This document shows positions 3,110 to 60,730 of a stretch of 64,000 bases of DNA, one piece after another (the stretch's first letter is position 1; each line of letters starts with the position of its first letter). The stretch is from Monocercomonoides exilis PA203 (taxonomy: Eukaryota; Protista; Preaxostyla). The notes below the pieces were generated by a model, which worked only from the letters and a program-made list of their open reading frames with translations, did not search any database and had not been told where the DNA came from. The stretch covers positions 2,356,001 to 2,420,000 of the forward strand of contig LSRY02000003.1 of NCBI GenBank assembly GCA_001643675.2, in the 5' to 3' direction. A program made the translations under genes and the position numbers.

Positions 3110-4330
3110 TTGTTGTACTCTTTCTCATTTAATATCTCTATTCCCATCCACTCAACCATCTTCCTCCACACCCACAACCCCATTGATGGTGCCATCCTCC
3201 CCAACCTCAACAGCCCCTCCACTTCTCTCTCTGCCTTCAACACTTCTTTTCTTCACCAAACTCGATCTTCATCAAATGATCCCGTTAAATATATTGGATC
3301 TGAATCTCAAAGAAAGGAATTAAGTAGATTGCCATTTACTGATTTGAATAGCTATCTCTTTGAGTGGTGCGAATGGAATTATTCAAATGGTGGTTCTTCA
3401 TCTGGTGGTGCTCTTTATGTTTATTGCACAAATGCAAATCTCACAATCACTTCTTGTTCATTCAATAATTGTTCAAATACAAATCACGGTGGAGCGTTAT
3501 ACAGTTACAGTTTACAGAATGTGAACATCGCTAAATCCAATTTCACAAACTGTTCGGCACTACATGGAGGCGCAATTTGTATTGATGGTCAAAAATCATC
3601 TTCTGTTTATTCATTCTCAGATAATAGAGTTGAAGGTTGTAAAATAACGGGCATTTATGGAACTGGTTGGTATTTCTGGATCTATAACATGACCTCAGCA
3701 AGTCAATTCCTGTTCACCAAATGCAAGTGCATTTCAAATTCTGGTGGTGATTCTGCTGGTTCTCTCACATTCAATTCCCCTCCAACCAATAAGCCAAATC
3801 AATTTTTAGTTAATGATTGTCAGTTCTTAAACAATAAATTGACATCAAATTCAACTTCATGGGGAGGTGCTGCAATGTTTTTCAGAGACACATATTCCTG
3901 GATGAATGGAATGAAATTCATCACTTTTTGTTTCTTCGATGGCAACACTGCCAAAAATGGCAGGGGCAATGATGTGTTTTTCAATGGCAGCAGCATCACC
4001 CAATCCCCATTCAATCAGTGCGGGTCAACAACAGAATCAAATAGAGTGTGGAATGCAGGAACTGCTGATGATGTTGAGTTCAACAAATGGCTTCCTCTCA
4101 TAACAACTTTCAAAATCGTGTCAAATAATGGGATAAACACCGATCTCTGCGGAATCACACAACTCAGTCCATGCAAAACAATAGAACATGCTCTTGTTCG
4201 CATGACAGATCCCCAAGACGCCTCCCTCACCCTCCTCAGTTCAACATTTGTTCCCATTCAAACACTCACTTTCAGCGCAGTTGACACCATAATCACTGAA
4301 ACCAATGAACTTTATCTGATTCTCATATAA
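3110..4330 (+). pseudogene. Cassette A: variable GGA beta-helix domain, 5'- and 3'-truncated
   Basis: 406-codon open frame starting at TTG; first ATG is internal. FEWCEW/GGAL/GTGWYF/FITFCFFDGN framework. Homology ends at 'AVDTIIT'. Confidence 0.75.
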
Positions 4331-4339
4331 ATTCTTTCA

Positions 4340-5800
4340 TTTTCTCATTTTTGACCATTTTCCATATCAGAGAAATATCCTATACCTATCATCTTCTTTT
4401 CATAAGAAGTTTGTTTTTTTTCAAAATCCTCAACGTCAGCTCAAATAAAAGCATTTCTTTGTCATTTTCAATTTGATTTCGCTTCTTCATCAAATACAAA
4501 TTCCGCTTGTTTCCTAAAGGAATCATCTATTTCTTCTCTTCAAATTGCATTTCTTCAATCATATCAGCAAGCTTTTCAAAACTTTCAATTTCTTTTATTA
4601 TTCCCATTTCTCCTTTTTTGAGCGCTGCAGACGCACATATTTCATATAATTTCTCTTCAAATATGCCTTTTCCTCAAAATTGCTTTCTCTCTTTGTTTCA
4701 TTTTCAACTATTTGTTGTGATTTTGATGTTGTGAAATCTCTCAAAGATCATTTACATCATCGTTCGTTCTAAATAACGTCTTCTGCCCTGCTCCTTCTAT
4801 TTTCTGTGAATTCTTTCAGCTTCCAAAATAATAATTCAGATTTAATTTCTATTTTTTATTGTGCACTTTGTGGTCGGCTTTTCTCGATAGGATTTAGAAT
4901 CATTTCCTTTGTAAAATAATTTCCGATGATATTCCGTGATTGAATGAATATTTCTTTTGAATTTCCAAATTGATGCAGAAGGCGAAGACTTCCTTCCAAT
5001 CTGAGAGTTGTTGAATGAAATGAAAAAAACAGTTTAATTTTTGTTGTTCATCGAAGAAAGCGTTGAAGAACATTTGAATGAAAAGACAAATTTTTTTCTC
5101 ATCAGAATAATGAATGAAACAAGAAAAGAAGGCGTATGTGGTGAATGACGTTGAGAGGAAGAAATGTGAATGATAAAATTTTCGTTTCAATTTTGCGTAA
5201 CTGATTGAACAGCTTAAATGTATTATAAGGTCGATGTTCCGATCCAATGCAAAGTTAGTGAATATGGCATTGAAAAAGTTGAAGATAATGGTGAAGATTT
5301 AGCAGTTCGTTGGAAAGAAGAAGAAGAAGAAGAAGAAGAAGTTGAAGAATTTGAAGAAGATGAAGATGTTGAAGAAGATAAGATGAATGAGAGATGAACA
5401 ATCAGTTAAATAATTTTTCTGAAGAAGATGATGAAAATGACTTGTATGATGTTGTCAGTTGGTTAAATGTCACATTTGATAAGTTGACTTCGAAAGGAAT
5501 ATAAAACCCCAATCACAAATTATATTGGCCAATTCGCATTAATCTGTCAATGAAAACTGATATCCTCAGTTCATTTGCAAACTTTGTGTGATTGCCTCTT
5601 CTTTCTCTTCAAAAACAAAAAACAATCATGTTTGTCTGTTGGCTCTGAAAATACAAAAAGCATGAAAAGAAGATATAAGAACGAAGAAGAATAAGACGAA
5701 GATGAAAAGGCAGCAGAAGAAAAAGAAGATAAAGAAAAAATTGGAGGAAGGTGAAGTATACGATGCAGAAGAAGACTGTTTTGTTTGCTTTGAGGTTGAT
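4340..5800 (+). repeat. 3' flank block of short cassettes (partial copies at ~10810, 29460-30190, 53230-53900; inverted at 20740-21470 and 37700-39370)
   Basis: Shared strings such as 'cgtcttctgccctgctccttct', 'gtcacatttgataagttgacttcgaaaggaat' and 'aaacaatcatgtttgtctgttggctctgaaaatac'. Confidence 0.8.
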
Positions 5801-7599: not shown

Positions 7600-9200
7600 T
7601 CATATTCTTTAACTGCTTTTGTATGTTCCTTTGGCTTTTGAGGGTATTGGAATGCTTTGTTGTGTGTGTCTTTTCCCAATCATTTATCATCTCTTTCTTC
7701 CTCTTCCTTCTCAAAATCAATCGAACTACCCTCTCTCCCTGATTCCTCATTCATCTCTAAACCACTTTTCGACATTTCCACCTGTTCCTCATCTTTTCCC
7801 ACTTCCTCTGCACTTCCATCTGAAGCTAAACCCAAAGACCCGTCTGCTGCTTCTTCTTCTGCTGCTCTTCTGTTCTCCTGTTGGATGCCATCAGATGGAG
7901 AAGAACTGCACACTTCTGGTTCCACTGAATGCAACTTGTCCGCCTCAGCCTCTGCCTTCACAAACCTCAGCCCACTCAGCCCAAGCTCCTCCACAATCAA
8001 AGGCGCCATCGCTTCTTACTGCTTCCCCTGGTTATCTTTGATTTTCTCCACAAACTCTCTGTGCGCTGTCGGATACCCGCCTTTCTCCTCATTCCCATCA
8101 CCTCCCTCTGCCTCTTCCCGCTCCTCCAGAACTGCCAGCGCAATCGCTGCTGGAGACAGAACCACATCCTCCATCCTCAGCCCCGCTGCCGACAGCCCCT
8201 TTTCCACAATCTCCCCCACTTTACACACTGCAACCTCTCACCCTATCACTTCATCGTCCAGCTTCACCACCACACGCCTCGACTGCAGCGATCGCGAAGC
8301 CAGAAGCAATGTTATAAACAGATCGCATTCACATCTGCCGCTGCAAAGATCCGCTTGCTCCCCGACTTCGTGCCCACCGACGCTGCAAGCGAAGGAAGCG
8401 GTGCCACCAGCGGAACCGAAAGCATCGCTGAAAGCGCCACACCGTACGCACACACAACACCTCCATACAGCACCGACCTCCGCGCCACAACAAATCATTC
8501 GAAGCGTCTGTTGCTCCTTCAGTAACGACTGTCTGTGATTTTCATACACACCAGCCGCCTCTCGATATTGTCCATCGCTCCTGCCGAAGTGAATGATGCT
8601 GCCACTGCCGAAGCATCCGAAGGGTCAATCACATGTGCTGATGATGGCTGCTCATTCTCTGAAGATTTCTTCTCTTCGCTTCTCCGCCTCCGGAATGGCG
8701 AAATTGATCAGCATGCAGCTCCAGTTGAAGAAGACGAAGAAGACGAAGGCGCTGAGCGAAGAGGCGACTGCTGCTCTGCCCCGGCCACAAGAAGCTGTTT
8801 TAAATAGGCTTTCGTGTCATACAACAGCTCCAATGGAAATACAAACACAACATCCTCATTCGGATCAGAAAGATCAACCAGCCGCAAAATCTCACCGTTC
8901 TCGAGCGATGGGAAAAGATAAAACAAGCTTTCTTAAAAAGTTGAGTTGAAATTTGAAGATGAAGAAGTTATGCTGATGATGAATGAATAATCGTTCTGGT
9001 CTAACATTAGACGAAAAAAAAAGTAGAATATGTGAAAAGATCAATTCAGAAATGGAAAATGCTGCAGTTGTTGTCATCTGCTCATTCTGTTGGATAAAGG
9101 CAAAGATTCCACTGAAGCCATGCGGCTTCAGAAAGATTCCACAAAATGTTTTCCTCTTCATCCTCAAAAGAAGAAGTTTGTGAAGCTGCAATTCCAGATG
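7600..9200 (-). pseudogene. GC-richer decayed gene of unknown function
   Basis: ORFs 8238-8549, 8016-8228 and 7680-8009 are in one frame separated by single stops. 8708-8926 is frameshifted upstream. Composition is coding-like. Confidence 0.5.
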
Positions 9201-9604
9201 AAAGAAATTTTCTTTGGCTTTGTGTGAGTTTTCTTGCCTGCCTTCATTTTCCAATCTATTTTCTTCCAATTTTTATTTGTAATTTTTTTCCTTCAGCTGT
9301 ATAATTTCTTCGTTTCTTCTTTTCTCTCTTTATCTCTCACACTGATGCAATTGATGGAGAATTCAAAACAGATGAAGAATATGTTGAGGAAATTGTTGCG
9401 TGGCATACTGTTGATGATTTGAAGAAGAATTTGAAGAAGATGATAAATGGATAGAATGAGTTGATTGAAGACTGAGAAATGTGAAGATAAATGAAGACAA
9501 ACAAAAATGAAGATGTTCGCAGAAATCGTTTAATTTCAGTTTTTTCAACATTGAGTTCATCTGGCAAATAAGATCCTCCAATTCCTCCCTCTCCATCCAC
9601 TTAA

Positions 9605-10804
9605 TCCCTCTTCCTCCACACCCACAACCCCATTGATGGTGCCATCCTCCCCAACCTCAACAGCCCCTCCACTTCTCTCTCTGCCTTCAACACTTCCTTT
9701 CTCCACCAAACACGCTCTTTATCAAATGATCCTGTTGAATATATTGGATCTGAATCTCAAAGAAAGGAATTAAGTAGATTGCCATTTACTGATTTGAATA
9801 GCTATCTCTTTGAGTGGTGCGAATGGAATTATTCAAATGGTGGTTCTTCATCTGGTGGTGCTCTTTATGTTTATTGCACAAATGCAAATCTCACAATCAC
9901 TTCCTGTTCATTCAATAATTGTTCCTGTAATGGAAATGGTGGAGCTTTGTATTGTGTATATTTGTTGAAAATTGATATTTCAAAATCCAATTTTACAAAC
10001 TGCTCTGCGCTTCATGGAGGAGCAACTGAAATAGCACATCCGCAATCAAATGCAGTTTGGACATTCTCTGAAAATAGAGTAGAAAGTTGTTCAATAACAA
10101 GTTGGTGTGGAACTGGTTGGTATTTTGGTCTCGATAACATGCCATCTGATGCAAAATTCTTGTTCAAAAATTGCACCTGTATTGCAAATACTGGTGGTGA
10201 TGCAGCTGGTGCAGTCACGTTTCATTACCCTCCACCAGTAATACCTCTTCAATATTTACTCCAAGAGTGCCAGTTCATCAACAACAAAGTCGAAAATCCA
10301 ACTTCCTATGGTGGTGCTGCGCTGTGTTGCACAAGAACATATGATTGGATGAGCGGGTTCAAATTCATCACATTCTGCTTTTTCGATGGCAATTCCGCAA
10401 CCAATGGCAGAGGAAATGATGTGTTCTTCAATGGAAGCAGCATCACTCAATCTCCATTTGAAAATTGTGGCTCAACAACCCCAACAAAAAGAGTGTATAA
10501 TAATGGACAAGCTGACAATGAAACTTTCAATGGCTGGCTTCCAATCATCGCCCAGAACAAAATCGTTGCAAATGGTGGAACTGATGCTGATGCCTGTGGC
10601 AGACCCCAACAGACCCCATGTGCCACCATCGAGTATGCCCTCACTGGCTTCATTTCCCTCCTCCAAGACGCCTCTCTCACCCTCCTCACTTCAACATTTG
10701 TTCCAACTCAAACACTCACTTTCAGCGCAGTTGACACCATAATCACTGGAAATGATGAAATTTGTCTGATTCTCATGTTAATTCTTTCATTTTCTCATTT
10801 TTGA
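9605..10804 (+). pseudogene. Cassette B: variable GGA beta-helix domain
   Basis: Frame open from an in-frame TAA at 9602 (LFLHTHNPIDGAILPN...). Tail type 'DADACGRPQQTPCATIE'. Ends 'DTIITGNDEICLILM'. Confidence 0.75.
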
Positions 10805-17835: not shown

Positions 17836-19990
17836 TCATTGCTTTGACACCAAACATGTTTTCCACGTATTCATTGTCAGCTGTATTCTCTTCGAGAAAT
17901 ATAAACAAATCGAAATTCCAAATGCTTCTGTTCTGTCATGTCCAGCAACCGAGTTGTCTTTCTGAGCGATGCTTGTCATGAAAGTGAACAAGGGTTCCTT
18001 CACAGAAGCGACAAATGATTTACACACAAAATACACATCTCTTCCGACACAGGCCTTGTTGGCTGAAAACACGATATTGGTGATGGAAAAGGTTGTGGAT
18101 GACACTTGTGAGCCTTCATTGAACTCGATCATGAGAGCACCGCCTCTTCCTCCAGAACTTGTATCCTCGCTCACAGAGCAGCTGGAGAAGGTGGTGTCAC
18201 TCACCGAAAATGTGTTGGCAGGAGCAGATGAGGCGAATGAGATGCACCCGCCATTGGTGGCAGTCTGTTGGTTTTGCGGAGCTGAGTTGATGTTGGTGAT
18301 GGTGCAGTTGGCGAGGGAGAGGGAGAGGGCAGGGGAGGTGGCAGAGGAGAGAACACAGCTGGTGGGGGTGGCAGTGGAGGTGATGTCGGTGATGTTGGAG
18401 GAGTTGAGAGCGAGGGGAGCTGTGAGGGAGGTGAGGTGGAAGATGCTTTGGCTGTTGAGGGGGAGACTGGTGATTGCTGTGTGGTTGAGGGCGAGGGAGC
18501 CAGCAGTGAGGAAGAAGAGGGGGGTTGTGATTGTTATGGAGGTTGTTCCGGTGATGGTGGTTGTGTTGAGGTTGAGGGACGGGGAGTTACCGGAGAGGTG
18601 GAAGAGGATGGGGGTGATTTGGTTTGAGGAGTTGTGGGCGATGGCGAGGGCAGAGACTGTGAGGGAGCCCTGGGTCTGTTGGAAGAGAGCAGAAGTGGTA
18701 GATGGATCTGGTGAAGAAGATGCAGATGAAAATGATGAAAATGATGACGTTGATTGTGATGACTGTGAATATGAGATTGGTGGTTGGGGAATGCCACTGG
18801 AGGCGATGGTGGTGGCAGTTGTGCCATTTCCAGTGATTTTAGTGTCAACCGCGCTGAAGGTTAGTGTTTGAGTTGGAGCAAATATTGAGGTGAGGAGGGT
18901 GAGAGAGGCGTCTTGGGGATCTGTCATGCGAACAAGAGCGAATTCGATTGTTTTGCATGGACTGAGTTGTGTGATTCCGCAGAGATCGGTGTTTGTCCCA
19001 TTATTTGACACGATTTTGAATGTTGTGACGAGAGGGAGCCATCTGTTGAACTCAACATTGTCAGCTGTTCCTGCATTCCACACTCTTTTTGCTTGGGTTG
19101 TTGAACCGCATTGCTGGAATGGAGATTGGGTGATGCTGCTGCCATTGAAGAACACATCGTTTCCTCTGCCATTTTTGGCAGTGTTGCCATCGAAAAAACA
19201 AAAAGTTATGAATCTTAATTCATTCATCCAAGTGAAGGTTGCATCCAAATAGATGGCAGCTCCGCCGCGTGTAGATGAAGTTGACGTCAATTCATTATTT
19301 ACAAATTGGCAGTCATTGATCGAAAACTGACTTGGTTTTATCTGAGGAGGCCAGTTAAATGTTACAGCACCTGCAGCATCACCACCAGAATTTGCGATGC
19401 ACTTGCATTTGGAAAACACGAAATGAAAATTTGTATAATCATTTCCAAGAGCAAAATACCAACCAGTTCCAATGCTGCTTGTTATTGAACAACTTTCCAC
19501 ACTGTTCTCTGAGAATGAATAAACAGAATTGGATTGTGGATATGCTATGCAAGCAGCTCCTCCATAAGCAGCCGAACATCTTGTGAAATTGGATTTTATG
19601 AGATCTATTTTTAACAAACTGTGACAATTCAACGCTCCACCATGATCATTGGTTGAACAATTGAAAAATGAACAGGAAGTGATTGTGAGATTGGCATTAA
19701 TACAAGTAACACAAAGTGCACCTCCTGGCGATGACCCACCATTTGAACCATTCCATTCGCACCATTCAAATTTATGGCTGTTCTCATCAAACGAAGTCAA
19801 TCTACCTGGTCTCTTTCTGTCGGTTTCAGTTCCCACATGCACCTCTGCAGCATTTGATAAAGAACGTGTTTGATGGAGGAAAGAGGTGTTGAAGGCAGAG
19901 AGGGATGTGGATGGGCTGTTGAGGTTTGGGAGGATAGCACCATCGATGGGGTTGTGGGTGTGGAGGAAGATGGTTGAGTGGACATAGAAA
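17836..19990 (-). pseudogene. Cassette C (long form): variable domain plus Ser/Thr-rich constant beta-helix region
   Basis: 668-codon ORF, extended upstream without ATG. A short deletion near 17915 shifts the frame after 'RTEAFG'. Confidence 0.75.
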
Positions 19991-20261
19991 GATAAGGTGG
20001 AGGATCTTATTTGTCAGAAGAGCACGCAAAAATAAAAGAGGAAAAAAAAAAACAGAAATTTCATCGAAAATCTCTGTTTTTATTTGTTATCATTCTCCTC
20101 AGCAAATCTCGACCTTCAATCAACGTATTTGATTCGTTCGTCGTCGTCGTCGTCTTCTTTTTCTTCTTCTTCTTCTTCTTCTTCAACTCCTTCAACTCCA
20201 ATAGCAACTTCGTCTTCACCTTCTTCTGCACCTTCTTCATCTTCTTCATCTTCTCCTATCA

Positions 20262-20265
20262 CAAC

Positions 20266-20324
<59 letters not shown>

Positions 20325-25226: not shown

Positions 25227-25269
25227 GAAAAAAAAAGAAAGAAAGAAAAAAGAAAGAAATTTGAAAAAT

Positions 25270-25308: not shown

Positions 25309-25720
25309 CAAAATAGAAAAGAAAAGAAAAGAAAAGTGAAAGAAAAACGGAACGAAATGGAATAAAATAAAATTATATATAATAAATGATATAAAAATAA
25401 AGTTTTTAATCAAAATATGTGAAGTCACTATGTAAATCTTTATTTTAATTTATTTCATTTCATGAAAAAATGTATAAGCAAAGAATCAATTTGACAGAAT
25501 TAATCATCAGGTGAAAACGTTCTTTTCTTTGCAGTTGTTGCATGAGTTGGTTCCAAAGATATTTTCAAAGGCAATATTCACTTCAAATAATGGAAATGAT
25601 AACAACTGTCTTTTTTCCGTTATCTTTCATTTTTACCCCAGGAATTTTTGACAGCACAAATTTGATTGAATGAATAATCATCAGTATGAAAGTTTATTTT
25701 TATTTTTATTTAATTTTATT
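25227..25720. other. Unique ~494 bp spacer of the giant palindrome, containing (GATA)n at ~25279-25308
   Basis: Arm symmetry stops at the poly-A run (25226) and resumes at the poly-T run (25721). Confidence 0.9.
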
Positions 25721-42065: not shown

Positions 42066-42463
42066 CAGATATCGCATAAAATACCGGACATCGCACAAAA
42101 TACCGGACAAGATCGATTTCACAACAACCGCAAAAGGAAAAATTCTGACAATTTTCCTAAAGATATACCTCATCAATACAAACTCACGTGACGTATAAGA
42201 CTTTCATTACTTCCTCGTTTATGCTCGGAAAAAAAGCTTTTTTTAAAACTCGGAGAAATAGGATTTTGAATTTCTACGAGTTTTAAAAAAAGCTTTTTTT
42301 CCGAGCATAAACGAGGAAGTAATGAAAGTCTTATACGTCACGTGAGTTTGTATTGATGAGGTATATCTTTAGGAAAATTGTCAGAATTTTTCCTTTTGCG
42401 GTTGTTGTGAAATCGATCTTGTCCGGTATTTTGTGCGATGTCCGGTATTTTGTGCGATATCTG
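42066..42463. mobile_element. 398-bp fold-back element / MITE, TA-flanked with CAG...CTG ends
   Basis: ~195-bp stem with two mismatches seen and a 10-nt loop (42260-42269). Two tandem 19-bp subterminal repeats 'atcgcaYaaaataccggac' at each end. Confidence 0.8.
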
Positions 42464-43209
42464 TATCAAAATTTTCTAGAAAAAATTTTTGATTTGACAT
42501 AAGGGGTAAAATACGGACTTTCAAGCTTTTTTTGCAGAAAGCAAGAAAAAATTGCTTCACTCATAACTTTGTTTCTCTTTCTCAGATTTCGAAACAAATT
42601 TGATTTGCATATCCGTAAGAAGGCAAAGTTGAAATCAAAACGAAAAGTTTTTCAACTTTTCACAAATGTCAAAAAATGGACTCATTTTTATTGTGTTTTT
42701 TGATCAAAAAAGTCAATGAAAAGTGCAAAATTTTTTTATGAAAATGCCTGAAGTGAAACGCTTTGCCCCATACGCAAAGAGTATGTGAAGAAAATTACAC
42801 AAGTTTTTCATTCCACAAATCAAAAGATATCTTTTTTTTGTAAATGATCTTTTTCGAATTTATTTATTTATTTTTTTTTTTTTCGTGGAAACTTTGCAAA
42901 AAAGAAAAAAAAATACTGAAATTTGGATTGTTTTGAAGAAAGTCATCAAACATTTTTTATTTTGGTGATGAGATAAATAGACTGTTTTTGGTATTCAAAT
43001 GGAGCATGCAAAAAACATTAGCATAATCAAAATCTTATTAACTTTTTTTTTAATATTTTTTTTTATTCAAATTCTCATATGAAAAAGAATATTTCATTTT
43101 GAATTCACTCCCTACCAACATTTGAATAATAATTTGCATTTCAGTGGAATCAACAAAAAAATATTTTTCTTTCTATCAAAAATTTTTTTAAAAGATCAGA
43201 AATTTATCC

Positions 43210-44140
43210 GCACCCAAAAAATTAATCGGGACCTGAAATTTTTGGCTCTCCAGAGCACTTTTATTAAAAGCAAAGAATAGAAAAATTTTTAATATATAAT
43301 AACAAGCTATTCCTGAAAATATTTTTTTATTTTTTTGATATTTTGTGAAAAGATCTGGAGTTTTTTGTTTTATTTTTTTAGATCAAAGAATTACTCATAT
43401 TTTAACGAGTTTTTTGTTTTGAGTGTTCTGAGTATTGTTATTGTTAATAAATTTAACTTCTTTATAATTTTGGTTATATTTCGTTGTTTAACACTTCGTT
43501 TTTTTATTATTTTTTGCGTTTCACTTAATTTCGATAAAAATATTCTAAAAGAAAATTTTCGTTGTCTTGTTTTTATAAGTTGAATAATAGTTATAAAACT
43601 GATTGAAATGTGTATCATCAAAATTTTGAAATGAAAGAATGCGATTTGAAGAAAATGAAACAAAAATACACAATTGCAAGAATTTTGTGTAATAATCACG
43701 ATTATTAGGAATTCAAGTTTTTCCTCATATTTGATTCATTTGTGAATTGATAATTTTCATGTTTCTGCTATTTAATTAACGAAAGATCTAATATCTTCAA
43801 ATGTTATCTTCAATTTATCGTAATTTAGTGAAATGAAAAAAGTATTAAAAAAATGAAGAGTTAAACAATGAAAAATAACCAAAATTATAAGGAAGTTATG
43901 TTCAATAACAATAGCAACACTTAAAAATCTCAGAACAAAAAACTCATTGAAATATGTGCAAATCTTTGATCAAAAAATTATAACGAAAAAATTCCAGATC
44001 TTTTCACTAAATTTCAAAAAAAAATATTTTCAGGAATAGCATGCATTAACATTTTGAAGGTTTCCTGTCATTTCAATTTTAACAGAAATGCTCCTATGAG
44101 CTGGAATATTTAGGTCCCGATCAATTATTTGGGTGAATGA
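43210..44140. repeat. Degenerate inverted repeat (arms ~43210-43500 and ~43860-44140)
   Basis: Complementary anchors: 'atcgggacct'/'aggtcccgat', 'tattcctgaaaatat'/'atattttcaggaata', 'ataattttggttat'/'ataaccaaaattat'. Confidence 0.75.
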
Positions 44141-44161
44141 AAATTTCTGTCTTTTTCGGGT

Positions 44162-45403
44162 TATTCTTTTGCTCTGACCTTTTTTAACCCACACTTTATT
44201 TTGTGGAGCTGGCTACGGCTTAATACAAGCTTGTAGCCAACAAAAAATAACTAGAAATGTTTATTTTTCTATATTTAACTTTTACAGAAAATTTTTTTTC
44301 TCACAATTTTTTTTTACTAAGAGATCTCGGTATTTTTTAATTTTATTTTTTGATCATTAAATTGATGGTCTTTCCATGAATATAACATTTTGGAAGTTTT
44401 ATGCAACATCATCATAATACAGAATATTCTTTTTTTTGTGTTTTATTTTATTTTAATTTTTAAATTTTTTTATTTTTATTTTTATTTTTATTTTTATTTT
44501 TATTTTTATTTTTATTTTTATTTTTATTTTTATTTTTATTTTTATTTTTATTTTTATTTTTATTTTTTATTTTTATTTTTATTTTTATTTTTGGCTTTTC
44601 ACATTTCACAAGTTTCTTTTTCACTTGTTTTCTCATTTCATCGACTTTTCGAAAAAATGAAATTTCATGAAGAATGATGAATTTTAATAAAAATTATAAA
44701 GCAGTATCTCATTTTTAACTCAACATATAATTGGACGCTCACATAATTTTTTGTTGAATAAATATGATTGGTTTAAAAATCAAAACTACCGAAATTGATG
44801 TTGCAAATTCAACTATTTAAAATCTAATTTTCTAAACTTTTTGGAACATCTGTGTTATTTCCATTTAAACATATATAAAGGATAATCAATATTATTTTTT
44901 CAAAAATTCATCATTCTTCATGAAATTTCATTTTTTCGAAAAGTCGATGAAATGAGAAAACAAGTGAAAAAGAAACTTGTGAAATGTGAAAAGCCAAAAA
45001 TAAAAATAAAAATAAAAATAAAAAATAAAAATAAAAATAAAAAATAAAAATAAAAATAAAAATAAAAATAAAAATAAAAATAAAAATAAAAATAAAAAAA
45101 TTTAAAAATTAAAATAAAATAAAACACAAAAAAAAGAATATTCTGTATTATGATGATGTTGCATAAAACTTCCAAAATGTTATATTCATGGAAAGACCAT
45201 CAATTTAATGATCAAAAAATAAAATTAAAAAATACCGAGATCTCTTAGTAAAAAAAAATTGTGAGAAAAAAAATTTTCTGTAAAAGTTAAATATAGAAAA
45301 ATAAACATTTCTAGTTATTTTTCGTTAGCTATGAACTTGTATTAAGCCGTAGCCAGCTCCACAAAATAAAGTGTGGGTTAAAAAAGGTCAGAGCAAAAGA
45401 ATA
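44162..45403. repeat. Near-perfect inverted repeat: arms 44162-44685 and 44903-45403, 217-bp spacer, internal (TTTTTA)n
   Basis: Direct reverse-complement match; mirrored ORFs 44390-44677 (+) and 44918-45175 (-). Confidence 0.95.
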
Positions 45404-45878
45404 TCCTTGCAATATTGCTAATTATTGGTTTTTTTGTTATGAAACAGAATTTTGAACCTTAGGCAGATAATGGCTTTGCTTCAAATTGAATATTTTCCAT
45501 GTTCATAAAATAAGAAAAGCGTGTAGGAAAACCTTTGAGGCTTGTTAACTATTACAGAAAAATTGCGATGACTGAAAGAATTGACAAAAAATTCTTCTTT
45601 CCATTGAAATTTTTCTTTCTTTCTTTCACAAAAACAAAAAGAAATTAAAAATATCTTCAATATTTTAATAAACGAAATAATATATGACAGTATTTTTGAG
45701 TTAAAAGAATTCGAACTTTTTCTCCTGTTTTTATTTTTTCATGATGAAAAAGTCAAAAACGTATGTTCGATACTTCAAAAATTTATGTGAAGTGCCAAAT
45801 TTCACTTCAACTCTATGAAGTATTTGTGCACTTTTAAGAAATAGAACAAAAAAATTAATCTAGTTGGTGAAATAAATA

Positions 45879-46509: not shown

Positions 46510-48011
46510 ATGGGAGGAGAACCAAAACAACGAGTTGGTGATGGACCTTGTGCAATATGTGATGTTTATAAGATAGATTGATATTATTTCCCAAGTTTAT
46601 TTTAACTTTATAAAATACAAAATTGGTATTTTTAGTTACGTCAACTTCAAGTAATTTTGGATGAAATAAAAACCATTCCTTCGCAAAGGTGTAATTCTAT
46701 TCAACAATTATTAGCATTTTATGCAGCAAGTGTGCATGATTAATGTATTTTTGGTAAAAATAATTTTTTTAAAGATCCTTCGAATGCCTCGGAGATGAAC
46801 AAATTAGCCTTTATATCGACAATTGTAAGTACATTAACCGAGGAATCTAGCTCGCTTTATAAAGAGTTAGCAGAAGCGCTCATTTCAATTTTGTCTCTTC
46901 ATGAATTAAACGAGAAAGGCGACTCAATGGGAACTGGAATTGTTCTTGTGAATAGCCTGTTAGCGTTGACTCAATGTTCTCATGAAAATGTATCTTCTTG
47001 TGGAATGATGGCTCTTTCTAATCTCATTTCAACCAATCCAACATACAATCTTATTATTTCACAATCAAGCTTTTTCTATTTATTACCTGATATTTTGCAG
47101 GAGAAGCAATCTTCATCGATTAAATCGAATTCATCTTTTAATTTGTCTTTGACTGCTTCGACTGCAGCAACCCCTCAATCTTCAGCCTCTCCTTCACTTT
47201 CAGATTCAGCACAAAGTTTTCAAAAATCATCTTCTTTTCCACTTTCAAACAAAGCAAGGCTTATGGGATTAGCGTCTGCATTGCTAAAGAGAGGAGTTGT
47301 TATTCCTCGTTGCGTAGAGCTGCTTAGGGCCGCGACTGAGCTTATGGATTCTGAAGACGACGAGTTGGCCGGAAAGGCTGCGGAGCTGGTTGTTTTGCTC
47401 AAAAGGAGAGTTGTCATCGGCCCATCTGGAAGTGAGATGATGATGACACAGGCCAAGCTGGGTGCGACCTCAGTGCGTCCTGAAGGCTCATCACTGGAAG
47501 CAAGTGCCTCCTCAGCCACGCCTGCGCTGCCGACGCTTGCATCCATTGAAAAGGAGCTTCGGATAAAAGATGAGGAGATCAATCGCATGAGGAGGGAAAA
47601 CGAGCGACTTATGGGCGAACTGAAGAAGAAGATGAAAGAGGAAGAAATGCCGGCGCAATCGTCCTCGACGCCTTCCCAGTCGAGTTCGGGCTGTTCGAGC
47701 TGCCCGAGCCCTCCGCCTCTGAATCCGTTCGGAGTGAATGAGCTGCCAGAGGCAGTACTCAACCCAATGTGGGGAATCCCTCCGCATTCGTCAGCCGAGG
47801 CGAGGGGAGACATTGTGACGCTGACGAACGCCAACACGGCGGTGTTTACGGTGGGGCCGGAGATCAGAAGAGGAATATGGCGTCTGGAGATGGAGATGAC
47901 ATCGCAGCACAAGGACGGGGGATACAGATGTGTGTATATGCAAGTGGGGATTATGAGTGAGTGGGAAATGATGTTGAAAAGGAAAGAAATAAAAAATGAA
48001 TTTGAAAGTTA

Positions 48012-48042
<31 letters not shown>

Positions 48043-49081
48043 TTTTTGATAAATAAGAGAAAGAGATGCTTGTTTGATTGGATATTTTTTTAAATCTATT
48101 TTTTTAATCTTTTATTTCTGGATATTTTTTGAGAAATTTAGTGATATTCATTTTTTTCTTATCATTTTTTTAAACTTCATTTTTCATTTATATTCTTTTC
48201 ATTTAACAGTTATTGGAATAACACCTTCGAATCACATTACTCCTGTTGGAAAGTTCTTGACTGATGATATCTGTTTGCGTTTCTATTGATATTTAGTGTA
48301 ATTCGATAATAACATTTATTTTTATTGATAATTCCATGACTGCTGTAAATCATATGGAAAATACTCTTTTTTCAAAAGACACTGCATGTTTCAGTGTATT
48401 TGCGTATGTCAATATGTCTTCATTTTTTCAACTGAGTTTTCTTTATTTCTTCATATTTCATCCACGTTTCTTTTATTCTTTTTATGTTATTTGGGCTTTG
48501 AACATAAAAAATGAAAATATGAATTTTTCATTTATGAACCTTTGAATTATTATTATTATTGTAATATTCAATTTTTATATTCAATTTTTAATAATTTTTT
48601 ATTTATTTTCATTGAAAATTCATTCAAAACTTCATTTTCTCGACCTTCTTCTTCTTCTTCCTCCTCCTCCTCTCCACAACACTTCCATTCCAGAGGGAAA
48701 GTGTGGTGCAACGGAAACCGGACAACAGGCAACCACCCTGCCGAGAACGGGAGGGCGCTGGCCGTCGAGCTGGACATGGACTCTCCTTCGCGCTCGTGCC
48801 ATCTGTTTGTGAACGGGCGCCAGCAGCCCATTTTCATTGGCGACCTGCCAGCCTCTGTGAAATTTATCGTATGAGGAAATTTTTCACTTTTCTTTCTTTT
48901 ATTTTATTATTTATAATCGTTATTATAATTTATCTGCCATTTGTTAATTTTTTTTTTGATTGAAAAGGTTTCTTTGTCGTGTGTCGGTTCAAACTGCCGG
49001 TTCATGTCTCTGAAGCGCTTGCCCGTAAGGCACATAGCAGATCTTCCGAAAGCAAAAGTGTTCAAGTACAAATTGATGTAG
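46510..49081 (+). CDS. Spliced gene: ARM-like N-terminus, coiled coil, C-terminal SPRY/B30.2-like domain
   Basis: ATG at 46510 and plausible GT-AG introns (46564-46635, ~46691-46774, further introns after ~47930, ~48272, ~48395, ~48870). Main exon is ORF 46795-47930. 'AVELDMDSPSRSCHLFVNGRQQP' is SPRY-like. Stop TAG at 49079-49081. Exon boundaries are approximate. Confidence 0.65.
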
Positions 49082-50359: not shown

Positions 50360-51300
50360 ACTCATCCTTCTCCATCCACTCAATCATCTTCCTCCACGCT
50401 CACAACCCCATCGATAGCGCCATCCTCCCCAACCTCAACAGTCCTTCCACTTCTCTCTCTGCCTTCAACACCTCTTTTCTCCACCAAATACGATCTTCGA
50501 CAAATGCTGCTGTTGAGTATATTGGAACTGAATCTCAAAGAGTGAAACCTGGAAGACTGGATTCCTTTGATGTTAACAGCCACAAATTTGAATGGTGCGA
50601 ATGGAATAATTCAAACAGTGGAAGCAGTCGTGGTGGTGCACTTTATGTTGTTTGCACAAATGCAAATCTCGCAATTACATCTTGTTCATTTTTCAATTGT
50701 TCAAGTGGTGATCATGGTGGAGCGTTATTCGTTCAAACTTTGTCAAATGTTAATATCACAACATCTAATTTTTCAAATTGTTCGGCGTTGCACGCAGGAG
50801 CTGCTTATGTAGGCTGGCCTCAATCAAATTCTGATTGGTCATTCTCGAAAAACAGAGTTGAGAATTGTTCAATAACTGGCTGTTGCGGAACTGGTTGGTA
50901 TTTTGCACTCGAAGGAACTCCAACAAGTGCTCAATTCCTGTTCACAAAATGTAAGTGCATTTCAAATACTGGCGGAGACTCCACTGGTTCTCTAACATTT
51001 AATTATCCTCCAGAAAACAAGCCAAATCAATTTTCAGTCAATGATTGTCAGTTTAGAAACAACGAATTGACTGCTTCTGCAAATTATGGAGGAGCTGGGT
51101 TGTGTTGCACAAACACCTTCACTTGGATGAGTGGAATGAAATTCATCACATTCTGTTTCTTCGATGGAAACACAGCAACTAATGGCAGAGGAAACGATGT
51201 GTTCTTCAATGGCAGCAGCATCACTCAATCTCCGTTTGAAAATTGCGGTTCAACAACTCCAACACTATGAGTGTGGAATAAAAATACAGCTGATAACTCT
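50360..51300 (+). pseudogene. Cassette I (variable domain only)
   Basis: ORF 50542-51270 plus conserved 5' block. TGA replaces the R of 'RVW'; homology ends at 'TADN'. Confidence 0.75.
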
Positions 51301-51987
51301 GAATAAAACATCTGGCTTCCTCATCTTTTCTCTCATAATTCTTCCAATTAAATGCTTTTCCCGCTTTCTTCATTTTTCCAAGCATTTTTGCTTTCTTTAT
51401 TTTCTTCCTTCATCATGCTTCAAATTTTCTATCTTTTTTTTCAAAACTTTTGATTTCTCCTGCATTTCGTCTTTTGTCTCTGCTTGTTGTTTCGCTTCTC
51501 GAACACTTTCCTCTGTTTATTCAATTATTCTTCTTCTCAAATCCAACTTCCAACTCAAACTTTGAATTCAATCTTCTTCTTCCTTTCATTCAAAAAAACC
51601 TCTTCCATTTTCTCAATTTCATTTCCATTTAGCATGCACCCTAAATCAAGAATTTCTTTTCCTATCCTCTTCCAATTTTCATTTGAAATCTTTTCCTTCA
51701 TCAATGTATTTGCTTGTTTCCATTTCTTTTTTCTCTTTATTTCTAATGCTGACACAATTGATGGAGAATTCAAAATGGATGAAGTGGATTTTGAGGAAAC
51801 TGTTGTGCGACATGTTGGAGTTTTGCAAGAACACGACGAAGACGACGAAGACGAAGACGACGAAGACGAAGACGAGGATGATGAATGAATAGTACAAGCT
51901 GATTGATGATCGATATTTGCGGAAATGAATGATAGCAAATTGAACAAAGAGTTTCGCTGAAATCATTTTTTCTTCTTCCATTTTTGT

Positions 51988-53226
51988 TTGTTTTTCTTAC
52001 TAACAAAATCCTCCAATTCAACCATCTTCAAACACATCCACAACCCCATTGATGGTGCCATCCTCCCTAACCTAAACAGCCCATCCACTTCCCTCTCTGC
52101 CTTCAATGCTTCTTTCCTCCACCAAACTCGATCTTTATCAAATGATCTTGTAAGATATAACGGTTCTGAATCTCAAAGAAAGGAATTAAGTCGATTGTCC
52201 TTTACTGATTTGAACAGCTATCTCTTTGAATGGTGTGAATGGAATGATTCAAAAAGTGAATCAAGTCGTGGAGGTGCACTTTGTATCGATTGTGCAAATG
52301 CAAATCTCACAGTCACTTCTTGTTCGTTCAACAATTGTTCGGCAAAAGGACACAATGGTGGAGCATTAGATTGCTTTTATCTGTTAAACGTTAACATCAC
52401 AACATCTAATATCACAGATTGTTCCGCTTTACATGGAGGAGCTGTTGAAATAGCATATCCACAATCCACTTCCGATTGGTCCTTCTCAGAAAACAGAGTG
52501 GAAAATTGTTCAATAACTGATTGGTGTGGAACGGGTTGGTATTTCTGGCTCAATAATATGACTTCAACTTGCCAATTTCTGTTTTCTGAATGCAAATGTA
52601 TTGCAAATTCTGGTGGTGATTCTGCTGGTTCTCTCACATTCAATTCTCCTCCAACCAATAAGCCAAATCAATTTTTAGTTAATGATTGTCAGTTCTTAAA
52701 TAATAAATTGACATCAAATTCAACTTCATGGGGAGGTGCTGCGCTGTGTTGCACAGCAACTTATTCCTGGATGAGCGGAAATAAATTCATCACATTCTGC
52801 TTTTTCAATGGCAACACAGCAACAAATGGCAGAGGGAATGATGTATTCTTTAATGGTAATTCCATAGCTCAATCTCCGTTTGAGAATTGTGGATCAACAA
52901 CCCCATCAAAAAGAGTGTGGAATGCAGGAACTGCAGATAGCGGTGTGTATAATGGCTGGCTTCCTTTTATCACTCAGAATAAAATCGTTGCCAACAATGG
53001 AACTGATGCTGATGCCTGTGGCAGACCCCAACAGACCCCATGTGCCACCATCGAGTATGCCCTCACCGGCTTCATTCCCCTCCTCCAAGACGCCTCTCTC
53101 ACCCTCCTTTCCTCAACATTTGTTCCTCTTCAAACACTCACCTTCGGAGCAGTCGACACAAAAATCACTGGAAATGATAAACTTTATCTGATTCTCATAT
53201 TAATTCTTTCGTTTTCTCATTTTTGA
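51988..53226 (+). pseudogene. Cassette J
   Basis: 412-codon frame from TTG. Tail type as in B. Confidence 0.75.
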
Positions 53227-54279: not shown

Positions 54280-55378
54280 ATCCTCCAATCCCTCCTTCTC
54301 CATCTACTCAACCATCTTTGTCTTCACCCACAACCCTATCGATGGCGCCATCCTCCCCAACCTCAACAGCCCATCAACTTCCCTCTCTGCCTTCAATGCC
54401 TCTTTCCTCCACCAAACACGCTCTTCACCAAATGCTGCTGTTGTATATGTAGGAAATGAAACTCACAGAAAATCACCTGGAAGACTGACTTCATTTGATG
54501 AGAACAGCCATCGCTTTGAATGGTGCGAGTGGAATGATTCTAATAGCGGAAGTGCCTGGGGAGGTGCGCTGATAGTTAACTGCACAAACGCAAATCTCAC
54601 AATAGAATCTTGTTCTTTTCGCAATTGTTCAACTACTGGGGAAGCAGGAGCATTATACTGTGGGCAACTATTGAAATTAAACATTGAAAAATCCAACTTC
54701 ACCAGCTGTTCAGCTGCTCATGGTGGAGCAGTCACTTCTTGGGCTCCTCAATCAAATTCTGATTGGTCATTCTCGGAAAACAGAGTGGAAAATTGTTCAA
54801 TAACTGATTGGTGTGGAACTGGCTGGTATTTTAATATGTATTATTTCCCAGAAAACGGTCAATTCTTGTTTTCCAAATGCAAGTGCATTTCAAACTCTGG
54901 TGGAGATGCAGCTGGTTCTCTCACATTTTATCATCCTCCAAGCAACAAACCAAGTCAGTATTCAATCAATGATTGCCACTTCATAAACAACAATCTGACT
55001 GCCTCTTCCACATATGGAGGTGCCGCAATGTGTTTTTATCCTCCTTTTTCCTGGATGAGTGGAGTAAAATTCATCACATTCTGTTTCTTCGATGGCAACG
55101 CAGCCACAAATGGCAGGGGAAACGATGTGTTCTTCAGTGGTAATGCCATCACCCAATCTCCGTTTGAGAATTGTGATTCAACAACCCCAACAAAAAGAGT
55201 GTGGAAAGCTGGTACTGCTGATAACGTTGAGAAAAATGACAGGTTTTGGCTTTTCTTTTCATATTCTTCCAATGGAATTCCTTTCTCACTATCTTCTCTT
55301 TTCCATCCATTTTTGCCTTTTCTATTTTCTTCTCTTAACATGTTTTTGATTTCTTCTACGTCTCATCATCTTGCTTGA
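54280..55378 (+). pseudogene. Cassette K (variable domain only)
   Basis: Frame open from ~54270 (SIYSTIFVFTHNPIDGAILPN...) into ORF 54671-55378. Homology ends at 'TADNVEKND'. Confidence 0.75.
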
Positions 55379-58300
55379 TGTTGTTCCACTTTTCAAATTT
55401 ATCCTCTATTTATCCAAATACTTTTCTTTGTTTTGACAGTTCTTTCTTCTCCTTTCAAATTCAACTCCCAACTCAAATTTCAAATCAAAAATATCTTCTT
55501 CCTTTCATTCAAAAGCCCTCTTTCTCTTTCTCCTCTTCTTTCTCTTTCTTTTTCTCATTTTAATTTGAGAGTATTTCCTTCAGCTGCAAATTTTCTTCTT
55601 TTTCTTCATTTCATTCATGATCTCTGATGATGAAACAGATCATGAAGAAAATCAATCAGATGATGTGAATGATGATAATGAAGAAGAAGCTGTGTGAAAT
55701 GTTGTTGATATATTTGAAGAAGAAGAAGAAGAAGAAGATGGTAATGATGATGAATGGATTGAATGAGACGATTAATTGTTGAAAATTGAGAAGATGGGAG
55801 TCAATAAATATCAACGTAGAAATTCATTGAAATTCTCTTCTTCTGTTTCTTTTTCTTCTGCAGAGGAGAAACATCTGAATCCTTTTCACTTTCAGCTCAA
55901 TCTCTTTCTCTCTCTCCAACAATAAATACTAAGCACGCGTCAATCTCTTTTTCATTCCATTTCTTTCAATTTTTCGTTTCCCTTTTTTCACTCAAAACAT
56001 CTTCCCTCAAAAATAATTCTTTGCCAAAGGTTAATGCCAGGCATCTTCGAAATATCTTGAATTTCATATGTCTGTCTGTATTTTTCCTTCCCTGCTTTTC
56101 TCTTTCTTCTTCAAAGCCACCTAATCCCTCATTCTTTCAGCATTCTTAAAAACAAAATAACAATCACTTCAAAAAATATATCAGCAAACCTTCAGAACCA
56201 ATGCTCAAGTCAATAACTATATTTTATCCCGTTGGCACCTGTTTTCTTTATCAATTTCATTATTCCTTTCGTTTTCGAATGTTTCATCATCTGATTCGCA
56301 AACCATCCTTTCCATAAGTCATTTATCCATCAAATGCATCGATTTCTGGTCCTTCTGAAAAATGTGAGATTTATGCATTTTGCTCAAATTCCATTCTCAT
56401 CATTGAAAATAATCCTATTTCTCATCTGAAAATATCATCTCCAATTCCCTTCCCAATCCCTTCACCCTGGGCACTTTCCATATGAATTCGCTCTCCCAAC
56501 TCTGTGGTCACCCTGCACAACAAGATATCCCGCTTTCATTCATTTTCATTCATTTCCACCTCCTGCCCTGAAAGAAACACAAAAACAATCAACAGATAAA
56601 TATTCATATATAGAAAATAAATAAAGACCAAACTGCGCTTCGACTGTTTTTTGCCAAACAGCCTCATTTCCACAGCCAACATCATTCAAAAAACCAATCT
56701 CTTTATTTCAGTCTCAGAATGGTCAAATTTCAGCACTGAATGCACCTCCACAAAATACATCGTGTATCCTACTGGAGGGTCTTTTCAGCCCGTACACATT
56801 GTGTTGCCTGTCAGGATGTGTTTTTTTTGTTTTTCTCATGATCCTCTCCTTTAATAATATTCTCAACCACCCAAAGAAGTATATCACGTTTATTTCATCA
56901 ACACCAGGCACATGAGGGATAAGGCGTATACAAGTGATGGAAGAGGATTATTTGTGAGAGAAGGTGGGGGTTGAGTATATTTTTGAGAATGTTAATGCTT
57001 CAAGAATGATTTTTGAATGAAAGAAATTCTGAGACAAAGGGGGTGGGGAAGGATAGGGAGAGATTTGTAGAGGAAAATGTAGAAAATATGTAGAGAAAAA
57101 GTTGGGGACGATAAAGAAGGTGATTATTGTTGATTGGAGATATGGAATTTGAAAAAAAGGAAAAGAGGGCAAAAGCTTGAAAGAAGAAGAATATTCTGAA
57201 GTGTTCAAATGGAAAAGGGTGTTTTTTTAAAAGAAAAGATTTTATGGAAGAGAATGGGAAAGATAAAGAAAAGGAAGGGATGATATTTTCTGATGATTTT
57301 GGGGGTTGAATGGAAGAGGGGAATGGAAAGGAAAGGAAATTAAGAAATATTTTCATTTTTGGTTTCTCAGTGAAGCGCAGAACAATTTCAAAAAGGCAGA
57401 AACGAACTGAGGATGTCATCTTTCATCAATTAATTTTCTTCGGCCTTCAACAAATATTTCGATAACGATTGTTTGCTCTTTGTCAAATCAACTTATTGAA
57501 TTCGATATTTGGCCCAATCAACGACTTCACCCAAATTAATCTCAACGTCTTCTTTAGGAATGTCAATTGACTGATTGCGCATTTCCCTATTACCACATAT
57601 ATTCACATTTTTTCGACTTGAACTTCATCTTCGTGGTCATCGTGGGATCATCATCTTCTTCTTCAGATAATCCTCCTTCATTCAATCAACCATCTTCCTC
57701 ATTTCTTGATTTTACAAACACAAAATTCGCCTTCTCACAATTCACCTGTTTATTCAGCGACAAGCACGCCTGTTATGAATCGCATAGCCAAAAACACACA
57801 AAATCTTCTTCACTCAACCATTTCTTCCTCTTCTTCGTCTCTTTCGTCCCCTTCTTCAACTTCAACTTCATTCTTCCTCATTCGTTCACACATTCGCACA
57901 GCATCTATCTTCATTTCAACAATTGTGACCCTCCTTTTCTTCTTCAACGCCTTCTTCGATGAACGAATTAAAAATATTCCTATTTCTATTTCATTCAACT
58001 CCCGTTAAATCCAGGGCCGAGCATCATCTTTCATTCTTACTCAGAAAGATAAAAGGCATATTTGTTGTTTTACGGAATATCTTTAAAAATTATTTTACAA
58101 ATGAAATGGTTCAATGTCAAATCAAGAATAGCCGATCATCGGGCACACAATCCATGAAGGTTGCCTCTGCATTATTTATTTTGAGATTGAAAGAATTACA
58201 GGAAGAAGAAGGAACAAGATTGGAAAAGATTTCTTTGAACAAACAGTTGCAAGGATGGTTTTCGAGAGATTTCGCAAGGCCACATGCCTTCAAAAAGTCT

Positions 58301-58490
58301 CAGAAGATGAAACGATGAGGGAAACTTATTTATTTGAAAAGGCAAATTTAATGGATAATTCTATGAAAGAAGAGAATAAATGCCCGACAGGCAATGTTGA
58401 TTTCATCAAATGCAAAAATGAGATGTTTTCTTCAATTTTGTGTGCCATCTCCCCAACTTTCTTCGATTTTACCGTCACTTGCACATAAAT

Positions 58491-60730
58491 TCACCGACAA
58501 GTCAGCTGATGAAATGATTTCTGCCTTATGATCTGCACCTTCTTCAGAAGACCCATCGCATTGCGTGTGCTCTTGCAGGACATCTTTGATAGCCAGCAAT
58601 ACATTTCTTTGATGCCAAGTATTCTATCCACACATGCATTGTCAGCTGTATACCCGTTGAGAAATATGAATGAGTCGACATCCCAATCGCCAAGTGCTTC
58701 TGTTCTGTCATGTCCAACAGCCGAGTTGTCTTTCTGAGTGATGCTTCTCATGAAGGCGAACAAGGGCTCTTTCACAGAAGCGACAAATGATTTACACACA
58801 AAATACATATCTCTTCCGACACAGGCCTTGTTGGCTGAAAACACGATATTGGCGACGGAAAAGGAGGATTCTGACACTTGTGAATCATCCTTGTACTCGA
58901 TCATGAGAGCACCGCCTCTTCCTCCAGAACTTGTATCCTCGCTCACAGAGCAGCTGGAGAAGGTGGAATCACTCACAGAAAATGAGTTGGCAGAGGCAGA
59001 TGAGGCGAATGAGATGCATCCGCCATTGGTGGCAGTCTGTTGGTTTTGCGGAGCTGAGTTGATGTTGGTGATGGTGCAGTTGGCGAGGGAGAGGGAGAGG
59101 GCAGGGGAGGTGGCAGAGGAGAGGACACAGCTGGTGGGGGCGGCAGTGGAGATGATGTGGGTGATGTTGGAGGAGTTGAGGGTGAGGGGAGCGGTGAGGG
59201 AGGTGAGGTGGAAGATGCTTTGGCTGCTGAGGGTGAGACTGGTGATTGCTGTGTGGTTGAGGGCGAGGGAGCCAGCAGTGAGGAAGAAGAGGGGAGTTTT
59301 TATTGTTATGGAGGTTGTTCCTGTGATGGTGGTTGTGTTGAGGTTGAGGGAAGGGGAGTTACCGGAGAGGTGGAAGAGGATGGGGGTGATTTGATTTGTG
59401 GAGTTGTGTGCGATGGCGAGGGCAGAGACTGTGAGGGAGCCCTGGGTCTGTTGGAAGAGGGCAGACGAGGCAGATGGATCTGGTGAAGAAGATGTTGATG
59501 ATGATGACAAGGATGAAAGAGATGATGTTGATTGTGATGAGTGTGAATGTGAGTTTGATGGCTGGAGAATGCCACTGGAGGCGATGGTGGTGGCAGTTGT
59601 GCCATTTCCAGTGATTTTTGTATTTGGAGCACGAAATGTGAGAGTCTTTGTGGGAGTGAAAGTGGAGAAGAGAAGGGAGAGGGAGGCATCGCTGAAGGGA
59701 GCAACGCATCCGAGGGCATACTCCACTGTGGCACAGGAGCTTTGCTGTGTTTTGCCACAGGCATCAGCATCAGTTCCACCATTTGAGACTATTTTGTTCT
59801 GGCTGATGATTGGAAGCCATCCATTGTACACACTGCTATCTGCAGTTCCTGCATTCCACACTCTTTTTGTTGTGGTTGTTGAACCGCATTGCTGGAAAGG
59901 AGATTGAGTGATGCTGCTGCCATTGAAGAACACATCATTTCCTCTGCCATTCGTCGCAGTGTTGCCATCGAAGAAACAGAATGTGATGAATTTTATTCCA
60001 TTCATCCAAGAGTAAGTTCCATCAAAGTATATTCCGGCTCCGCCCCATGTGGAAGAAGAAGTTAATTTGTTATTGATGAACTGACACTCAACGATTGAAA
60101 ACAGGTTGGGCTTGTTATTCGGAGGCCAATGAAACGTGAGAGAGCCAGTTGAATCGTTGCCAGAATTTGCGATGCACTTGCAGTTTGTGAACAAGAATTG
60201 AGCATTTGATGGCATATCATTGAGCCAGAAATACCAGCCAGTTCCACACCAATATGTTATTGAACAACTTTCCACTATATTTTCTGAAAATTTCCAAACA
60301 GAATTGGATTGAGGATAGTACAAGTGTGCTGCACCTCCATGTAATGCCGAACAACTTGTGAAATTGGATTTTGTGACATTTATTTTCAGCAAATTTCCGC
60401 AATATAACGCTCCAGCATGATCATTGGATGAGCATTTATTGAATGAACACGAAATGATTGTGAGGTTTGCATTAACGCAATTAACATAAAGTGCGCCTCC
60501 ATGGCTAGTTCCACCATTTGAATTATTCCATTCACACCACTCGAAGCGATGACTTTCAACATCAAACGAAGTCAGTCTACCAGGTTTCTCTCTTTGAGAT
60601 TCAGTTCCAATGTGTTCAACAGCAGCATTTGGTGAAGAGCGTGTTTGGTGGAGGAAAGAGGCATTGAAGGCAGAGAGGGATGTGGATGGGCTGTTGAGAG
60701 AGGGGATGATGATACTGTTAACGGGACTAT
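58491..60730 (-). pseudogene. Cassette L (long form)
   Basis: 633-aa ORF plus open upstream variable domain. Longest retained constant region. No signal peptide or TM anchor seen. Confidence 0.75.

Follow-up and report, generated by a model that had tools for sequence, protein, structure and literature searches.

Head-only copies of giant beta-helix receptor genes in Monocercomonoides exilis: a candidate reservoir for slow gene conversion

The MgPar repeats of Mycoplasma genitalium and the chicken immunoglobulin pseudo-V genes are partial silent in-frame copies that exchange sequence among themselves as well as with adhesin or receptor genes. They have one or two recipient genes, in the immunoglobulin case with dedicated somatic machinery, and in this they differ from the arrangement analyzed here in Monocercomonoides exilis, a mitochondrion-free gut protist and bacterivorous commensal that belongs to the oxymonads, as a preliminary description of this DNA had guessed from its letters. 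The window, as we call the whole stretch studied, comprises 64,000 nt of chromosome LSRY02000003.1 (positions 2,356,001-2,420,000, i.e. 2.356-2.420 Mb of a total of 2,548,433 nt) and lies on the right arm, about 128 kb short of the right chromosome end. It holds twelve copies (cassettes A to L) of the head of a giant beta-helix receptor, 0.9-2.3 kb each and on both strands. The complete receptor genes are single-exon and dispersed over many chromosomes, and the partial copies, limited to the membrane-distal head, stand in one array. All protein relatives of the window segments are M. exilis hypothetical proteins. Coordinates below are window positions unless a locus is named (L001 to L012 are fetched loci).

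Among the described systems, the functional pseudogenes of Anaplasma msp2/p44 (PMC2789410) and Borrelia vls (PMC11499132) resemble this one in having partial in-frame copies of a variable region between conserved anchors, non-expressed there and presumably also here, and segmental mosaics. However, these systems have one expression site, fast one-way conversion and, in vls, about 90% cassette identity, whereas M. exilis has at least 45 complete genes, which are 68-81% identical to the cassettes, and cassette-cassette exchange dominates. The layout of vls, msp2, pilS and VSG type that had first been proposed therefore holds for the partial in-frame copies and the mosaic genes, and fails for the single expression site. 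The VSG archive of Trypanosoma brucei and Pneumocystis msg (PMC7289013, PMC10622565) share with our locus a eukaryotic, chromosome-end-proximal archive with mosaics among paralogues; they differ in monoallelic telomeric expression and a GPI-anchored coat, where the M. exilis receptors are single-pass, bear pseudokinase-like tails and are encoded at internal loci. The Pmp-like proteins of Chlamydia and trichomonads (PMC6701047) come close in another respect, that is, in GGA(I/L/V) and FxxN motifs, a right-handed beta-helix, expansion in a metamonad, a single transmembrane (TM) segment and a cytoplasmic tail. In contrast, the three M. exilis heads scanned gave no Pfam Chlam_PMP match, and the receptors end in a TM segment and a kinase-like tail instead of an autotransporter barrel, have Cys-rich coils and measure about 2,700 aa. 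Our literature search found no cassette archive for trichomonad Pmps, and nothing relevant on surface variation, conversion, beta-helix receptors or head-only arrays in oxymonads.

Within M. exilis, tyrosine kinases are the largest gene family, with 332 members (PMC6759080), and the assembly paper places unclassified repeats densely on scaffold3, overlapping protein tyrosine kinase genes (PMC8767320). Our complete receptor genes are probably members of this tyrosine-kinase-like family; the passages of these papers that we rely on do not mention a beta-helix ectodomain, truncated head copies or conversion. The present finding explains some of the unclassified repeats of the genome.

Complete receptor genes and partial head copies

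Each complete gene examined has an ATG, a signal-peptide-like N-terminus, a Ser-rich linker, the same 5' block as the cassettes, the head, stalk modules and one strong TM segment, in a single open reading frame (ORF) of 2,050-2,900 codons that extends an annotated long relative upstream. The long paralogues (at least 45) lie on many chromosomes, and all nine close-subfamily long loci that were fetched, from six contigs, carried the ATG and the signal-peptide-like segment in one long ORF. Full-length copies with the expected parts were thus found, and the single expression site assumed in the preliminary description was not, since the recipients are many and the nine checked are all complete at their 5' end. 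Two complete genes fetched from LSRY02000003.1 sit on its left arm. An alternative genetic code or an upstream spliced exon was rejected, because each parent reads as one exon in the standard code and the splice signals lack conservation.

A tail resembling a kinase C-lobe is present in 41 of the 46 long proteins, with RWxAPE kept in 41. Canonical HRD or DFG motifs were not found by pattern scan of the 46, and the Pfam matches cover only profile positions 162-258; with a partial domain and no canonical catalytic motifs, these tails are, to judge from their motifs, pseudokinase-like and not active receptor kinases. The other five proteins end in low-complexity charged tails (L002, L007), so that tails appear interchangeable. 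It should also be mentioned that the NCBI models of the receptors (L001 8621-10000, L002 8339-10000, L005-L007, L012) start 450-550 codons late and lack the signal peptide, and that small antisense models are annotated across the true 5' part of the same genes. The largest gene family of M. exilis would include giant beta-helix receptors whose gene models are mostly without their N-terminus.

With respect to the window copies, the first position homologous to the complete genes lies 112-136 nt ahead of the HQTRS codons in A, B, C, F, G, I, J and K, 95 nt ahead in H, and 56-61 nt ahead in D, E and L, whose 5' block shows deletion or decay. This agrees with the common internal start point, partly lost in D/E/L, that had been noticed before, and the same is true of the reported absence of an in-frame ATG, signal peptide and membrane anchor. 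In all twelve copies the interval from the upstream stop to HQTRS is free of in-frame Met codons (the first Met lies 137-262 codons inside the stop-to-stop frame), and none of the twelve reaches the TM segment, which in complete genes stands about 1,900 residues farther on. Counted along the parent, the copies start at about residue 270-390 and span exactly the head, or the head and first stalk module, in frame with common conserved anchors; their silence is only suggested, and for L alone. Their 3' ends fall into three shared classes, at about codon 272 (G, I, K), 350 (A, B, D, E, H, J) and 700 (C, F, L), and copies of one class have a common downstream junction sequence.

Although twelve paralogous segments are present, as first counted, only ten are distinct, D being equal to E and C closely similar to F as twins inside a large palindrome. 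The distinct copies show pairwise amino acid identities of 62-84% (median 67%), far above chance expectation, with a dN of 0.23, a dS of 1.0 and a ratio of 0.22. The array extends past the window: a 20-kb locus at 2.09-2.11 Mb (L009) holds five further open copies whose breakpoints are those of the window copies and whose flanks are homologous, and about 10 more annotated fragments, mostly on LSRY02000003.1, end at or near the codon-350 point. One copy at that locus (L009 15555-17603, minus strand) keeps the ATG and signal peptide and is cut at the codon-272 point; it could be a secreted head acting as a decoy, or an intermediate of cassette birth.

The AlphaFold2 (AF2) model of the head is an all-beta solenoid (pLDDT 81, pTM 0.79) that VIA-align matched with Z up to 18.8 (rmsd 3.6 over 237 aligned residues), and the matches listed are mostly tailspikes, polysaccharide lyases and alginate epimerases, i.e. 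pectin-lyase-fold beta-helices. Foldseek with the same model gave no match at E<=0.001 and weak beta-helix rows only; Pfam found no domain in the three heads scanned. The feature neighbours of the head in the Atlas were DUF1565, Chlam_PMP and Beta_helix. Each head has 1-3 GGA(I/L/V) and 3-8 FxxN motifs. The head is thus modelled as a right-handed parallel beta-helix of pectin lyase-like fold, in agreement with the beta-helix surface protein proposed earlier. The single variable domain between conserved flanks, also proposed, was not observed: hypervariable positions recur along a fixed framework, with a mean amino acid identity of 53-76% per 25 columns and 89% at the GRGNDVFF block. Such columns closely flank each GGA-type motif on both sides and are enriched in aromatic residues (23% vs 13%); by analogy with solved beta-helices, they may form the groove face.

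Exchange of segments and state of the cassettes

Identical runs between cassettes reach 343 nt (D-H), 242 nt (H-L), 180 nt (L and a copy at L009) and 166 nt (A-B), where shuffled sequence gave 85 nt at most. Exchange also involves complete genes. Cassettes D/E and MONOS_5008, on LSRY02000010.1, agree in 323 of 333 nt (97%) across the most variable coils, where the next best match is 75-77%. MONOS_5057, sister of MONOS_5008, is 81% identical to it at the N-terminus and 86-96% downstream, falls to 62-77% in the tract region and is B-like farther on. Since MONOS_5008 is cassette-like precisely where its sister differs, the heads of complete genes are replaced segment-wise. Further cassette-gene tracts link A with MONOS_15922 (185 nt at 96%) and L with MONOS_7931 (125 nt at 95%), and none so nearly identical occurred among 36 gene-gene pairs. 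For codons 53-165 the tree places each of five complete genes in a cluster with cassettes (support 100/98+), and for codons 176-242 their partners are different (both trees were made without the twins E and F); in addition, the distance matrices of different segments are nearly uncorrelated. The complete genes are thus segmental mosaics of cassette sequence at the MONOS_5008 tract and the two shorter ones. Taken together, the alignments and trees show that tracts of 100-500 nt have moved among cassettes and between cassettes and complete genes.

The cassettes lie between decayed pseudogenes that belong to unrelated families and contain many stops. Frameshifting indels number 5-15 per kb in syntenic flanks and are absent from the cassette cores, where 5.3 (H/L009 pair) and 15.7 (A/D pair) would be expected (P(0) of 5e-3 and 1e-7). 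Where a column is otherwise invariant, the private changes of 15 cassettes divide into 9 nonsynonymous (N) and 15 synonymous (S), compared with about 9.7:1 under neutrality (p 2e-10); complete genes give 14 N to 10 S, so that the cassettes are no worse. Damage is limited to the cassette edges, at the 5' ends of B, D/E, H and L and the 3' ends of I, C and D/E. Furthermore, the A-D cassette dS of 1.3 exceeds the 19-25% difference of the flanks, and cassette content was therefore replaced in place, after duplication of the unit. These comparisons show cassette cores that are open and constrained in their framework, in flanks that are decaying.

Donor archive, graveyard or switching system

Our preferred reading, held with moderate confidence, is that the cassettes are a reservoir of heads from which many dispersed giant beta-helix receptors are slowly diversified by ectopic gene conversion. 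Homologous recombination of the ordinary kind would bring about the conversion, with the conserved 5' block, the GRGNDVFF block and the stalk as its anchors. Transfer would run at least partly from cassette to gene, a donor role that would keep the cassettes intact, and would swap residues of the ligand groove, so altering the binding of the receptor to bacterial or host glycans, virus or antibody epitopes, with stalk, anchor and signalling tail unchanged. The timescale would be that of populations or evolution, with dozens of recipient genes and no fast single-site switch. The gene-conversion archive of the preliminary description survives in that the cassettes are open, constrained, mosaic and exchanging with complete genes; it does not in its one expression site, and the cassette identities are to many complete genes and not, at about 90%, to a single cognate one.

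Several observations weigh against this proposal. Near-identical tracts occur in 13 of 105 cassette-cassette pairs and in 3 of 135 cassette-gene pairs, in a DNA comparison that covered 9 of the at least 45 complete genes. The differences between D and the gene polarise 4:6, which does not support the one-way transfer from cassette to gene supposed at first; the zero branch of D in the tree was rejected as a direction signal for the same reason, and the complete genes are slightly closer to cassettes than to one another (p 0.027), a result that carries no direction. Private changes in cassettes may stem from unsampled paralogues. The RNA signal of the complete genes is an allele skew shared by about ten of them. 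Finally, second-order selection on donors is theoretically weak unless conversion is frequent.

A rather unlikely alternative is that the copies are functionless fragments of a birth-and-death family, spread by segmental or palindromic duplication and kept open by overwriting from functional genes. The gathering of lesions at the edges would fit, as would the position of the cassettes amid other decayed families and palindromes, the graded truncation of the L009 copies, one of them with ATG and signal peptide, and the lack of direction in the polarisation. However, if refreshing kept neutral change to about 0.3% or less, the cassettes should be almost identical to living genes, and only 4 of 459 cassette windows (0.9%) are within one mismatch of any of the nine sampled complete genes (about one fifth of the genes), compared with 59 that match another cassette; the cassettes are therefore not fresh copies of the sampled genes. 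Exact 25-residue matches are also a small minority of windows, even with 31-46 genes over codons 160-350, and neighbouring many-paralogue families do decay. Since a fast refresh would leave near-copies, and a pool converting only itself would still decay, these figures favour, within incomplete sampling, selection on the cassettes as donors.

A stronger form of the donor reservoir is an anticipatory variable-receptor system, in which the archive would rewrite the ligand groove of signalling receptors, few being expressed per cell, for clone-specific prey recognition or escape from virus or antibody. Its logic would be like that of lamprey VLR assembly or avian immunoglobulin conversion, and we regard it as speculative and distinctly unlikely. 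Apart from this stronger form, a donor archive that serves dozens of receptor-pseudokinases instead of a single coat gene would give cassette conversion a new layout, and the prey recognition of a bacterivorous commensal, or its evasion of host or virus, would become testable; the archive may also bear on the failure of axenic M. exilis culture.

True antigenic variation, with one or few complete genes expressed at a time and rapidly rewritten from cassettes under host immunity in the style of vls, msp2 or VSG, is very improbable. Cassette layout and mosaicism would suit it. So would the RNA, which was available as contigs that neither rank genes nor give strand: the stalk allele at 59192 has 3.8% of DNA depth and 58-71% of RNA depth, and receptor expression is skewed toward this minority allele, which MONOS_5008 carries. 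Nevertheless, about ten complete genes carry it, and we rejected the skew as proof of one expression site. Moreover, there are too many complete genes for such a system, their cytoplasmic signalling-type tails are unlike coat antigens, and the longest 100% cassette-gene tract is 109 nt. In 39 of the 46 long proteins the sequence was the same in the older EukProt set and the newer NCBI annotation, made years apart, as consensus sequences from host-free culture and mostly for the second half of the head (the older set splits one gene that the newer joins). This argues against fast fixed switching in culture, and, with the best cassette-gene tract at 97% and not 100%, there is no trace of the rapid switching first supposed. 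As no single expression site exists, we do not class the locus as antigenic variation, despite its behaviour as a cassette archive. Recognition of prey or virus is as plausible a role as antigenic variation under host immune pressure.

It is likewise very improbable that the cassettes are conserved because they are expressed themselves, whether as exons joined by alternative or trans-splicing, through a non-AUG start or as short products of an internal Met: their strong constraint, the annotation of several as short hypothetical genes, the pyrimidine tract and branch-point-like word ahead of the 5' junction in B, C/F and K, and one exact 208-nt L-specific piece in one RNA run are outweighed by the absence of AG in G, I and J and of a conserved GT at the 3' junctions, by copies on both strands with single-exon parents, by a first Met that varies over 125 codons with upstream sequence equally conserved, and, among the DNA and RNA contigs placed on 55300-61250, by the lack of a splice-like RNA joint at the ends of L, whose head has single-copy DNA depth and an RNA depth (5.6) at the level of its flank pieces (4.4-4.9).

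Architecture and other features of the window

The array lies in a gene-poor, palindrome-rich part of the right arm (Table 1). The arms of the large palindrome are 0-1% divergent in most 400-nt bins over their inner 6.4 kb and 5-23% divergent farther out; an assembly artefact is unlikely in view of this graded outer divergence.

Table 1. Cassettes and associated features of the window
Feature	Position	Strand	Description
Cassette A	3118-4303	+	head-only, ends at ITG point; mosaic: 5' part B-like, middle J-like, end C/L005-like
Flank common to A, D, E, H	4330-5775		decayed pseudogene of unrelated family on opposite strand; many stops, indels
Cassette B	9583-10753	+	annotated as 221-aa hypothetical protein from internal Met; middle similar to complete genes MONOS_5057, MONOS_4080
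Palindrome	14916-35893		centre near 25,470; ~10 kb arms carrying C/D and E/F
Cassette C	17892-20003	-	long type (head and first stalk module); frameshift near 3' end; palindrome twin of F
Cassette D	21544-22690	-	5' block partly deleted; 349 codons identical to E
Variable tract of D, 333 nt	22105-22437	-	97% identity to MONOS_5008 (L007 9713-10045, other chromosome)
Cassette E	28243-29388	+	palindrome twin of D; MONOS_5008-shared tract at 28495-28827
Cassette F	30821-33087	+	long type; open frame stops at 32931
Cassette G	36368-37306	-	short type; 305 nt at 97% to copy 250 kb distant (L009)
Cassette H	39420-40568	-	own 5' part; middle L-identical (242+54 nt); tail D/E-identical (343 nt)
Cassette I	50360-51321	+	short type; stop codon ~10 codons ahead of homology end
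Cassette J	52008-53175	+	codon-350 class
Cassette K	54291-55252	+	short type; 31 residues identical to complete gene MONOS_1523
Cassette L	58494-60749	-	long type; head single-copy in DNA contigs; RNA only at flank-level depth

A second large palindrome occupies 62337-64000, with arms 99% complementary over at least 800 nt and a centre near 63,170, and runs off the window. At 42063-42466 there is a hairpin element resembling a miniature inverted-repeat transposable element (MITE), with 197-nt arms at 99% and a 77-78% relative at L002 4666-5037; nested inverted repeats with (TATTTT)n/(AAAAAT)n tracts at 43190-45406 are probably non-autonomous DNA transposons. A 449-codon ORF at 46744-48090 (plus strand) has an ARM-like N-part and a coiled coil, with no Pfam match above cut-off, and a GC-rich segment at 8113-8909, with open frames on both strands, is 72% identical to L002 1158-1975. 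Finally, an open 304-codon fragment at 261-1172 (minus strand) belongs to another beta-helix receptor subfamily (51-57% to P0101 and P0135) and likewise covers the head region only.

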